Shown piece by piece: positions 607-55,349 of a DNA stretch of 64,000 nt (the stretch's first letter is position 1; each line of letters opens with the position of its first letter). The stretch is from Octopus sinensis (taxonomy: Eukaryota), in assembly GCF_006345805.1 (NCBI RefSeq), contig NW_021831847.1, positions 364,999 through 428,998 of the forward strand, in the 5' to 3' direction. The notes under the pieces were generated by a model. It ran no database searches and was not told where the DNA came from. It worked only from the letters and a program-made list of their open reading frames with translations. Both the position numbers and the translations under genes were made by a program.

Positions 607-3048
607 TTATTTCTCAGAAATAATTCGGAGGTAACGAGTGGGGCATAGTAATCCCTGAGGCATGTGACATATTAGGATAACACATTGGCTAACTGACGTT
701 ATACGCCTCTTCACTAAATCGCACTTCCGAACTCCCACTAATCACTCTACCTTCAAAATCAACAAAAATCCCACGATCTAAAATAAAGAAATAAAAATAC
801 TGTTAAACAGAACTAAAAGACACACATTCTTGTCATCCAAACGGTATGTCACAACGTCGTGAGGAATGATAGTCCCCCTCATCTACAACTTACACCACTG
901 ACAGTACCGTGTCCTCAGAAGTGCAAATTGTTGACACGGAATTATTTTTGAAATTAAAAATTTTAAATCCCTTGGAAGATCCATAAACCACTTTCATATT
1001 TTTTTGTGAATCAAAAAATAAATTGACTAAGAGAGGTCGAATCCGAAGTGATTTGAGAGCCTGGAAATGACCACATAGAAGTACCTTATAAGGCATAAAC
1101 ATCGAATGGGGATCCTTATGCCACACATAAATCTCAATGGAAAACCCAACAGCAATGGCCAGGAACACATTCTCATCAATGCTGACTGTTTTAAAACATG
1201 AACAATCCACAAATGTGCAACATATCAATTGTCTGCTCACTGCAGGAGGGCTGTTCTGATTGACCGACTGGAGCATATAGTTCAAAGGAATGCAGTTAAG
1301 ACTGTATATTTTCCGCATTATCATCACCACACAGTTCAGTCCGACTAGCACGTTTATTTGAAACACAGGCTCCTTCATTATTTGAAACACTACCACATCA
1401 AATGACACACATACAGTCCCCGTGTCCTGACTGGTCGAGAAGGAACAGTCCTTGGGATGTCCCCACAAACAGATTCACATCCACCACACACGCACAAAAT
1501 ACCTCCGAGTTGAATTTTATTTTATATTTCCTTATTTCAGGCACTGATTGAGACTTTGGAGAAGACCGTTTCTTCAGAGTGAGGTCAGTTAAAGGATTTT
1601 TAAGTTTAAATTTAATTGTTTTCCGAATGCTATAAAATTATAAAAAGACAAAACTTATCCGAGCGGAATGGGGGACTTTGATGTCTCTTTTTGTGTTTTT
1701 CGACCTTCAAAGTAGAGTCTGTTATGCTAGAGGGAGATTTCATTGTCACATCCACGTGACCGACATATTCTTTCCTCGTATCTGATATTTCTGGGTCCCT
1801 CGGTTTATTGGGGAGGTGAATCATAACTACACATTACTCGCCTTCTCTACCATCAAGACTCCTTCTGGAGTCCTTACGGCACAATTCTTTCATTTGCTTG
1901 ATAGTCTGACTGACTTGTCCACTTTCCAGAGTTATGAAGGGATGGGATATGAGATCACTCGACTTTGGACGGTCTTTAGGGTCCCGATGTAGACACAGCC
2001 TTAAGAAGTCGTGCATCTTGGGAGACCAGGCTTTCTGTCTTCTTAGTTTGGGTGGGGGGATTGTCGGGATGAGAAGAAGAGCCTTCATTGGGTGGTAGTT
2101 GGCCAGTGCTAGGAATGAAGTAGGCAAATATACGAGGCTTTCCTTCTGCCATTTGGATAAGTGTTATTCCCAGAGACCAAATGTCACACTGTTGAGTTAT
2201 TTATTAACTATTAACCCTTCCGTCGTAGGTAGTCTGCTTTTCTGTCTCACAGTTGATCACTTCCGGGGCCATCCTAAGAGTAAATGGGAGATCTGACCAA
2301 TAGGGAGTGCCTATGAATGTATTCCGTCCTCCAATCGACTTGTCCAGGAGGGCACTCACCCCAAAATCGACTAAGAACTAATAGAATTAACGGGTTGCCT
2401 AATTTTATTTCACATCGGTGTGTTATTAGAATATTCTGGCCTTTTATATCTCTGTGGATGATGTTGTTTTGGTGGAGATGTGCCAACCCCTATAAAATAT
2501 AGTGGCACCACGTCAAACGGATAATATTTCCCGCGTAGCAAATGCTATCCAATTTTCAGGCATCATATTAGTTTTTGTAGCTAATTATTAGATTTAATAA
2601 ATAAAATACCCCTTATTATTTTATCTAGAGTGCCCATGCTACAAAATTCCATTACAATCCACAATTCCTCCGTTTTTCCGCGAATTGGCGTACTGACAAA
2701 CGAATTAAAATAGTTGGCTATATTCCGATGGCGGGAAAACTTATATTAAATCAAAAAACTAACTTTTCTCAAAATATCGACCTCAAGTCTGAATGCCTCA
2801 ACGTCATTCTAAGAATAAAATCACATCCCGACTTTCTCCAGTAACATAATCTTGATTGCAGTGAGTTGGCCTGACTTGAGATGTATTGCCTGCAAATTGA
2901 TGGGCTAAGTACCTTCCAGACTGTCCCGTAGGTGCCTTTACCAATTGTTTCAAGGAGTCGGAATTCAGAAGGAGAGCCCTTGTGGATTTTTGGCCAGAAA
3001 ATTTACTTTTAGACTGGAGAGATCGAGTTGCGAGCCTTGACTGAGCAT
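607..3048 (-). CDS. MAP4K4: STE20 GCK-IV kinase (misshapen/MAP4K4/MINK/TNIK): kinase plus CNH domain, about 16 micro-introns; 3' end approximate
   Basis: Hand-spliced: [14 protein letters not shown]|[22 protein letters not shown]|[13 protein letters not shown]...[10 protein letters not shown]...KL|VDFG...GTPYW|MAPEV; CNH start [37 protein letters not shown]; introns 23-30 nt, one GC-AG (2371-2398). Confidence 0.93.
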
Positions 3049-3229
3049 TCTAACACAAACAAATTTATTATGTCCAGATTTAGGCAATTTATTAAACTTT
3101 ATTTTATCATGTTCATAAATTTAAATTTACATAAATTATTTTTTCTCAAAATTCATTTTAATATCACTAATAAAATAAATCAAATAAAAAATGCTTTTTA
3201 ACAATGCTATTTTAAACTATTTCCAAAAT

Positions 3230-53275: not shown

Positions 53276-53504
53276 TTATTTTCTTGTTTTCTTTCTTTTT
53301 AATTTGATTTTTTAACTTAGTTATGACTATTGAAAGTGAAACTTGTTCTGATTTGTTGCATTTATTTGTTTATAGGATAATAAATAATCAATTTTAATCC
53401 TGGCGTCGATATTCGATTATTTTAACTTTATTTTTAAAAATCGTCATTTGAGAAAAAAACAATAAATATTTGTTAGTGCAAAGCCTTAAGATTCAAACTT
53501 TTTA

Positions 53505-55349
53505 ATGAAGAATTACGTGATCGGTTTTAAAAGCAGCTACGATTCAGGATTGTTCAACGATCGAGTTCACTATGAGAGCATGATCCAACAAAACATTCTT
53601 GAATCTGAGACCAAACAGCTTTTGATTGAGGACCAGATTGAGCAAAAAAGGAGTTTTAATATCTTAGACAATCAACTCAATATTTCGAAACAAATTAATT
53701 TAGAACAATTTAAAGAATTTATATTTTCTGGTAGACTTTCAAAGAAACGTACAAACAACACAATGATGGAATACATATCACGAATTGTCATTACTAAATC
53801 TTATTCTGGACACGTCAAAGATTCAAAAAATGAACATTCACAGCAAAAAAACATCAATTACAATCAAATTGATCAAATTGGAGAATCAAAAATAATAAAA
53901 CTTGAACTCATTCCTCGAAAATACTCAAAACCAAATCGATATGATCCACCAAAAATCAGATCCCCGCCAAAAAAGATGATTTTCCCAACGATCCGATCTC
54001 AAAAAATAAAGACCGAGTCACCAAAACTTGAAATCCTGAAAAGTCCTCAAATTTCCACAAAAAAATATTCGCCTAAATTCTACATTATGGGAAAAAATGG
54101 ATCTAAATTGTTTATGAAAATGTCTAATTTGTTAGAGTGGAACGAATTCTTTTATCACTCGGATGGATTAAAACTTACAACAAACGTGACAAGACACTCA
54201 AACTGATGTGGGTTGAGTGCAAGTCGTTTTTTCATTTCGAAACATTCAAAGAAGGTTTGACGAGATAAAACATGTAGAGGAAATTATATGGTCAATCACA
54301 TTCAGAATTGTGAAGTTTTGACCAATAAAATGAACTTATTTGTAAATTTGTACGAATATGGTCAATCCTGTTCAAACTTAAGACTACAAGAGTTCATCCC
54401 CGAGACTTTCACGATCAAAAATTCCAATGAACTCTCCGACTTTATCGAATCCCGTTATTCTGGTTTATATCACGTGTCAATGTAGCTGAACAAATCTGGA
54501 TCTGTAAACCTGTCAACCTTAATCAAGGAATAGGAATTCAACTGATTCGATCAACGGAGGACTTGAAAGCCATGTTTACCACAAAAAATAAATTCCGTGC
54601 AAAAATAATGCAAATGTAAGTTTGCCGATGTGATCCAACAGTTACATTGAACGTCCTCTGCTCCTTCAAAACAAAAAATTTGACATTCGGACATATATGG
54701 TTATTGCAAGTACAAAACCATTTCTCGTCCTCTTCAAAGAAGGGTACGTCCGTCTGAGTTGTCGACCCTATCGAATCGAAGACCGCGATCTGACCACTCA
54801 CTTGACTAACCAGGCATATAAGGGGTCACTCACGAGTAGTACGTGCAGAAAAAAAACCCCGAATACCATCAAATGAAAGAAGAGACCGCTTGGTCAATGG
54901 ATAAGTTGAACGAATATTTGAACGAAATTTATGCAAAACGCGGAAAACTAGAAAAGAATTGGACTAAGACAAAATTAATTGTTGAGCTGTTTGAGTTAAA
55001 TTGATAGGAAAAAATGAAGGAAATTTCGTTATTTTGTTTCAATTCAGTGAAAAACAAACTTAAAATACAACACGGATTTTTTGAAATTTTTGGTCTTGAT
55101 TTTTTGGTCGATGAAAATTTTGGAATTTATTTGCTCGAAATCAACACGAATCCTGCTTTTGCCATCAACTGTTCGGCTTTGGTCGAAATTATTCCCCACG
55201 TGATCAGGGAGTCCATTGGTTGATTTTCCTTATGTATGCTTAAAGAACTCGCCGTAGAGTGCTTTGACAAAATCGTGGATCAAAAAAGTATCACTCCCAT
55301 CAAAGCTCTTAATAAATTAAAAATTATATATAATGAAGAATTTGATTAA
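53505..55349 (+). CDS. TTLL10: Tubulin tyrosine ligase-like glycylase, TTLL10 type, 7 micro-introns
   Basis: FYIMGKNG, LMWVECKS, WICKPVNLNQGIGI, YIERPLLL..KFDIRTY, HLTNQ|YVQKK, FGLDFLVD..YLLEINTNP; GC-AG intron 54814-54839. Confidence 0.88.

Follow-up and report, generated by a model that had tools for sequence, protein, structure and literature searches.

Probable GC-AG introns, mostly after exons ending in AG, make up about one in ten introns in a 64-kb window of a dicyemid-like genome

Introduction

The GT that opens an intron is among the most invariant gene signals of eukaryotes. GT-AG introns account for 98.3% of animal introns, and GC-AG introns form a known class at less than 1%, which align with GT-AG introns of other species (PMC7072748). 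Animals in which more than a few percent of introns use other donors are rare, and they have shed light on how the 5′ splice site is recognized by U1, U5, and U6. Here we describe a stretch of 64 kb from contig NW_021831847.1 (positions 364,999–428,998; hereafter the window, numbered from its first letter), in which seven of 69 very short introns appear to begin with GC rather than GT. The seven had been singled out in an original prediction made from the letters of the window.

Several described systems come close to this one in different respects. Oikopleura dioica and Eurytemora affinis have about 10% non-GT donors, mainly GA-AG (and GG), for which a variant U1 isoform has been suggested (PMC7072748). 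In Symbiodinium minutum, GC donors are nearly as common as GT donors, and the 5′ signals are weak (PMC4083563). Introns as short as those of the window are known among animals only in dicyemids and myxobolid myxozoans, and the donor signal of Dicyema japonicum has been reported as “GTa” only (PMC13644364). The open literature on the ultrashort introns of dicyemids and myxozoans gives no report of donor dinucleotides or of GC-AG introns.

Results

Frequency of GC donors

Rebuilding the genes by spliced alignment gave 69 introns of 20–31 nucleotides (nt) in 13 genes, 62 with GT-AG and seven with GC-AG borders (Table 1). These introns, their exact borders, and their frequency in the window are shown by the alignments. 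The GC-AG share is 10.1% (95% confidence interval (CI) 4.2–19.8%), in good agreement with the predicted share of about 10% in some 67 introns; it is 11.5% among the 52 introns that are verified by homology (46 GT, six GC) and 7/61 when the cathepsin paralogues are counted once. The value of about 1% that had been assumed for typical animals is likewise borne out by the published figure of less than 1% (PMC7072748).

The seven GC introns lie in six unrelated genes across 52 kb. Their GC...AG strings are present at the positions listed in Table 1, three on the minus strand and the other four on the plus strand, with the donors GCAACC, GCTGGG, GCTCTA, GCAATT, GCAAGT, GCACTT, and GCATAT, none of which resembles a U12-type donor ([AG]TATCCTT). 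In length they are ordinary for the window, falling at 24–28 nt within the GT range of 20–31 nt; the mode of all introns is 26 nt, the median is 25–26 nt, and the shortest verified intron has 22 nt. No GA, GG, or other non-GT/non-GC donor was needed in the 52 homology-verified introns, with every boundary permitted.

The counts come from a protein-to-genome spliced aligner written for this analysis, which allows any boundary for introns of 15–45 nt and canonical boundaries up to 400 nt. Its penalties (10 for GT-AG, 12 for GC-AG, and 22 for all other boundaries) favor GT. References were homologues from a protein search or sequences taken out of Protein Data Bank (PDB) alignments. We turned to this procedure because an ab initio dynamic program that chains open reading frames (ORFs), which was kept for drafts and dropped for counting, both loses in-frame introns and invents GC introns. 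It overlooked in-frame, stop-free introns such as 2274–2297 and the 27-nt introns of BCAT, and it put borders wrongly in RPSA, LHX, NDUFS3, and CTSL. Three of the GC introns that it proposed (BCAT 43137–43164, NDUFS3 51664–51683, and TMOD 50024–50043) proved spurious. Across transposon debris it produced long false gene models in which about one-quarter of the “introns” had a GC donor, so frame continuity alone is no evidence for such an intron.

The in-frame introns at 2274–2297, 1061–1084, 44131–44157, and 43843–43869 (all minus strand) are invisible to ORF-based prediction, and their retention would add eight or nine residues. Lengths divisible by three occur in 20 of the 69 introns, which is no depletion; in contrast, a depletion of such lengths has been described for ciliates with tiny introns.

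Table 1. Positions of GC-AG introns, further intron candidates, and transposon tracts in the window (a slash marks the exon junction)
Feature	Position	Strand	Description
MAP4K GC-AG intron	2371–2398	−	28 nt, phase 1, kinase domain (…EIKL/VDFG…), exon end TTAG
RPSA/uS2 GC-AG intron	21293–21316	−	24 nt, phase 0 (…FTNRGQ/KQFMEP…), in-frame TAG inside
PLAA/Doa1 first GC-AG intron	32630–32655	+	26 nt, phase 1, WD40 domain (…SHRGE/VSCLH…)
PLAA second GC-AG intron	32755–32780	+	26 nt, phase 1, WD40 domain (…YRLE/GHSLPVWD…)
MIC60 candidate GC-AG intron	34859–34882	+	24 nt, phase 2, near gene start, donor AAG/GCAAGT; gene model only
Possible eighth GC-AG intron, mitofilin-like gene	35299–35365 or 35310–35367	+	67 or 58 nt; frame and splice-site enumeration, ab initio model; outside the statistics
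BCAT GC-AG intron	43384–43410	−	27 nt, phase 0 (…ISKNM/GGFSVSERE…), in-frame TAG inside, exon end ATG
TTLL10 GC-AG intron	54814–54839	+	26 nt, phase 0 (…HLTNQ/YVQKKNPEY…), exon end CCAG
Transposon debris, large tracts	3371–16900, 26300–30100, 38900–41600, 45300–47200, 57800–63500		RVT_1, hAT, DDE_1/Tc5, DDE_3

Evidence for the individual introns

For six of the seven introns, homology confirms the GC-AG borders at the level of sequence, and for the seventh, in the mitofilin-like gene that may be MIC60, they are plausible. The clearest cases are in MAP4K and TTLL10, where the aligner picked the GC border with 60/60 and 15/15 references, respectively, and where the GT alternatives remove conserved sequence, the DFG motif of the kinase in the former and YVQKKNPEYHQMKE in the latter. 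In PLAA, the border of the first intron was picked with 6/7 references and that of the second with 4/7, and both junctions are gapless against yeast Doa1 (PDB 3odt). A 41-nt GT alternative to the first intron loses one WD40 repeat match (−9.3 bits), and the second gains 5.5 WD40 bits over a 17-nt GT alternative that adds NFG.

The remaining two were compared with structures and with family profiles. The RPSA junction is gapless against three eukaryotic uS2 chains from the PDB, and spliced alignment agrees. Its product scores 222.9 bits against TIGR01012, a model specific for eukaryotes and archaea, versus 215.8 bits for a 15-nt GT alternative that adds AGN, a difference of 7.1 bits; the Pfam model Ribosomal_S2 does not discriminate between the two (74.7 versus 75.1 bits). 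The BCAT intron is supported by spliced alignment and by a gapless PDB alignment to human BCAT2. Its product beats that of a 30-nt GT alternative in 8/8 matched NCBIfam models of the BCAT family, by 0.7–6.6 bits, and in the two best models by 4.8 and 5.1 bits.

The original prediction had held that all seven can be spliced only as GC-AG. Homology upholds GC-AG splicing for six of them and is lacking for MIC60, and “only” is too strong a word because in-frame, stop-free GT-AG alternatives exist for all seven. MIC60 apart, however, those alternatives either damage or remove conserved motifs or imply introns of 15 or 17 nt. Left in place, the RPSA, BCAT, and MIC60 introns would bring in-frame stops into the coding sequence, and the other four would shift the frame.

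The MIC60 structure remains a model because the protein search for homologues was empty; a Pfam Mitofilin match reached 20.2 bits, which is below the cut-off. The candidate intron is flanked on either side by the same open frame, and its removal drops an in-frame TAA downstream of the ATG at 34776 and upstream of a predicted transmembrane segment. Two in-frame GT-AG alternatives exist, 34823–34882 (60 nt), which also removes the TAA, and 34823–34885 (63 nt). Between these, the GC-AG candidate is the more likely reading because its 24 nt are typical of the window and its donor is AAG/GCAAGT. Farther into the same gene, two open frames flank 35299–35367, and the in-frame single-intron links between them all use a GC donor. 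Such an intron would be unusually long for the window; alternatively, there may be a micro-exon, the assembly may contain a frameshift, or the model may be wrong.

Orthologous introns in other animals

The exons of several homologue genes were mapped exactly, which allowed comparison of the GC introns of MAP4K and TTLL10 and of both in PLAA, with five reference genes for PLAA; an intron-less TTLL homologue was uninformative for intron positions. In the kinase domain of MAP4K (778–3006, minus strand), 10/10 introns match those of the annelid Capitella teleta in position and phase, and six match those of the coral Acropora digitifera. All seven TTLL10 introns (54110–55245, plus strand) match those of the frog Spea bombifrons in the same way. 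At the compared MAP4K and TTLL10 positions, introns are 22–29 nt long in the window versus 50–4000 nt in the reference species. Because 17/17 introns match Capitella or Spea, the junction calls are reliable and anchored independently of the splice dinucleotide.

Three of the GC introns have counterparts among these, all of them GT-AG. The MAP4K intron at KL/VDFG shares its position and its phase (1) with introns of Capitella and Acropora. The TTLL10 intron at HLTNQ/Y has the position and phase (0) of an intron in Spea, whose donor is aaccag/GTATAT versus aaccag/GCATAT in the window. The first PLAA intron has the position and phase (1) of introns in a beetle, Harmonia axyridis, and a mite, Medioppia. 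Judged by these alignments, at least three GC introns stand at ancestral animal intron positions, and because all orthologous introns that were found are GT-AG, the GC donors would be derived in the lineage of the window by a T-to-C change at +2.

Donor-site context

The GC donors differ from the GT donors of the window on the exon side. A G at −1 precedes 7/7 GC donors versus 32/62 GT donors (Fisher p = 0.016), and AG at −2/−1 precedes 6/7 versus 14/62 (Fisher p = 0.0018), the exception being BCAT with TG. Viewed from the exon, 6 of 20 AG ends are followed by a GC donor (30%, CI 12–54%) versus 1 of 49 other ends (2%). With +2 left out, GC donors match the U1-complementary consensus CAG/GTAAGT at a mean of 5.1 positions versus 3.5 for GT donors (p = 0.007); with +2 included, the means of 5.1 and 4.5 of nine are not significantly different (p = 0.23).

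On the intron side, no enrichment was found at +3 to +6 in the seven GC donors relative to the 62 GT donors. Typical GC-AG donors are near the full consensus, whereas those of the window are as weak at +3 to +6 as its GT donors. Window donors in general carry little information past G at +1, T at +2, and a weak A at +3. The original prediction describes the context of the GC donors correctly: G at −1 throughout, AG at −2/−1 in six, and a strong intronic consensus that is mostly absent, with GCAAGT in MIC60 only.

Gene content and likely source of the window

The window has a G+C content of 37%, and decayed transposons (RVT_1 reverse transcriptases, hAT, and DDE_1/Tc5 and DDE_3 transposases) take up about one-half of it. 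Interspersed are animal genes: a misshapen/TNIK-type MAP4K, RPSA/uS2, a LIM-homeobox gene, PLAA/Doa1, the mitofilin-like gene, three cathepsin L genes, BCAT, tropomodulin, a bZIP gene, NDUFS3, a gene with an EMAP-II domain, and TTLL10. A dicyemid such as Dicyema is the most likely source, judging by this G+C content, the abundance of RVT_1, hAT, and DDE elements, the bilaterian genes, among them that of the ciliary enzyme TTLL10, and the introns of 20–31 nt. The intron length, the G+C content, a repeat load of about 49%, and ciliary TTLL10 are consistent with Dicyema japonicum (36.7% G+C; PMC6736024; see also PMC6543705, PMC13644364).

Some of the genes merit separate remarks. The EMAP-II/tRNA-binding-domain gene (AIMP1-like; 52540–53275, plus strand) lies immediately 5′ of TTLL10 on the same strand, and ab initio chaining merges the two. 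The cathepsin L genes, at 36600–38400 and 56300–57500 on the minus strand, form a tandem pair with a third copy 19 kb off. Their intron sequences are nearly identical, which suggests recent duplication, and alignment of the downstream copy (∼36.6–37.25 kb) to procathepsin L does not start before residue 106. CNH homology in MAP4K ends near 745–780 (minus strand), and references resume only past a 379-nt gap with simple repeats; perhaps the gene is interrupted at its 3′ end, or this end lies outside the window. The linker of the LIM-homeobox gene (22860–22900, minus strand) holds a candidate in-frame 24-nt GT-AG intron (…YYHKNI/LKNTAESE…), which was left out of the count.

Discussion

We think it quite probable that the GC-AG introns of the window are genuine U2-type spliceosomal introns, derived from GT-AG introns and tolerated after exons that end in AG, in a dicyemid-like genome whose introns have become reduced to about 25 nt. 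In mechanistic terms, an ancestral GT donor would turn into GC by a T-to-C change at +2 of the intron. The C would cost one base pair with U1, a loss that could be tolerated where two pairs come from the exon end: an upstream AG would contribute two extra base pairs with the U1 5′ end as well as contacts with U5 loop I. The acceptance threshold at the 5′ splice site would have to be very low in this genome, and the little information held by its donors overall suggests that it is. Although the exon-side bias itself is directly visible, we infer the pairing rationale.

Further, the share of C at +2 after AG-ending exons (30–38%) is close to the C/(C+T) of the window (0.36), which suggests, in few cases, that T and C are nearly neutral there. 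Extended to the whole genome, this would mean that the 5′ splice site is now defined by the exon end rather than by the intron, with +2 free to be U or C after AG and required to be U otherwise, and with thousands of GC-AG introns genome-wide. We regard this extension as possible but rather doubtful.

A more radical explanation is that the spliceosome itself is altered in this lineage, through a changed U1 5′ end or U6 ACAGAGA box or through loss of factors that proofread the 5′ splice site, such that the reading of U at +2 has been lost. The very weak intronic consensus in both GT and GC donors would fit with this, as would the share of C after AG, which looks as if +2 were unconstrained there. 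However, a general loss of +2 reading is disfavored because GC is nearly absent after other exon ends, where it should also appear, and because no GA or GG donors were seen, in contrast to lineages with a suggested variant U1 (PMC7072748). Scans with Rfam models and for tRNAs found neither small nuclear RNA (snRNA) genes nor other RNA genes in the window, and nothing in it speaks to splicing proteins either. We consider such an alteration unlikely, although it is the most probable of the alternatives. The original prediction had proposed relaxed recognition of +2 that is offset by exon-side pairing and that possibly stems from altered U1 or U6 snRNA or from lost proofreading factors; the enrichment of AG and G agrees with the pairing, but a threshold model fits equally well and the relaxation is specific for C.

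The introns might also be real and their abundance a local fluctuation or the result of selection bias, with GC-AG only slightly raised genome-wide, at about 2% or less. It is true that we have a single window with a wide CI (4–20%), and GC-AG introns go unmentioned in the open literature on Dicyema genomes. But the probability of finding at least seven GC introns in 69 is 6 × 10^−6 if the true rate is 1% and still 5 × 10^−4 if it is 2%, and the seven belong to unrelated genes spread over most of the window rather than to one family. A fluctuation of this kind seems improbable.

Still less probable is that the GC-AG calls are artefacts of gene modeling, the true introns being nearby GT-AG introns of odd length or with shifted borders, or the stretches being translated. 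Such a reading draws on the stop-free GT-AG alternatives close to all seven and on the record of ORF chaining, with its three false GC calls in real genes, a further questionable one in MIC60 (35310–35367), and its many GC “introns” in debris. It is contradicted by the homologues, which pick the GC borders although all boundaries are allowed and GT is favored, and by the three borders that match introns of distant animals in position and phase. The GT alternatives, moreover, lose DFG, the YVQKK stretch, a WD40 repeat, or 5–9 profile bits, and translation of the introns runs into the stops or frameshifts described above. For six introns the artefact reading is largely refuted. Finally, assembly errors or unfixed polymorphisms that turn T into C at +2, of which no positive sign was found, can practically be set aside, as seven hits at one position of 69 introns imply an error rate of about 10%, the flanking coding sequence is without frameshifts or stops, and random errors do not explain the bias toward AG exon ends.

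Several points nevertheless weigh against our preferred explanation, that of GT-derived GC-AG introns tolerated after AG. The sample is one 64-kb window, possibly chosen for looking unusual, and the genome-wide rate may therefore be lower. The statistics on donor context come from seven GC introns. Support for the MIC60 intron is limited to a gene model, and none of the five PLAA reference genes carries an intron orthologous to the second one in the window. The in-frame GT alternatives of 15 nt in RPSA and 17 nt in the second PLAA intron are disfavored by homology and intron length only, and splicing at the GC junctions is itself deduced from homology. Protein searches with the peptides of all seven junctions returned no sequence of the organism itself, and exact look-ups of a complete single-exon gene and of eight long ORFs were likewise empty.

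If the tenfold excess of GC donors, tied to AG exon ends, holds genome-wide in this lineage, whose introns are the shortest among animals, the organism would offer a natural test of how little information suffices to define a 5′ splice site. About one-tenth of its introns would then be mis-annotated by gene finders and junction callers that look for GT or depend on long introns, and with them a large share of its multi-intron genes. A shift of splice-site definition to the exon end, if true, would mean that the most conserved splice-site pair of animals has become relaxed in one context, in connection with minimal intron length, and thousands of GC-AG introns would have been overlooked by current annotations and logos.

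Comparison with known systems

The described systems each share some of these features. Dinoflagellates such as Symbiodinium resemble the window in heavy use of GC donors, but they are not animals, have long introns, use GA as well, and have a G after the acceptor AG, a bias of which the 69 introns of the window show none. Oikopleura and Eurytemora are alike in having compact genomes and about 10% non-GT donors; in the window, however, only GC was found, with no GA or GG needed in the 52 homology-verified introns. The introns of Dicyema japonicum, Dicyema sp., and myxobolid myxozoans are like those of the window in their length, their approximate “GTa” donor, and their conserved positions (PMC13644364, PMC6543705, PMC2222250). 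Finally, the U2-type GC-AG introns of animals, fungi, and plants are alike in their GC...AG borders, their ordinary positions, and their interchange with GT at orthologous sites; they compensate for C at +2 elsewhere in the donor, as those of the window may do. The window differs from them in frequency, at about 10% versus less than 1% in animals (PMC7072748), and in that its apparent compensation is confined to the last two positions of the exon, −2 and −1.

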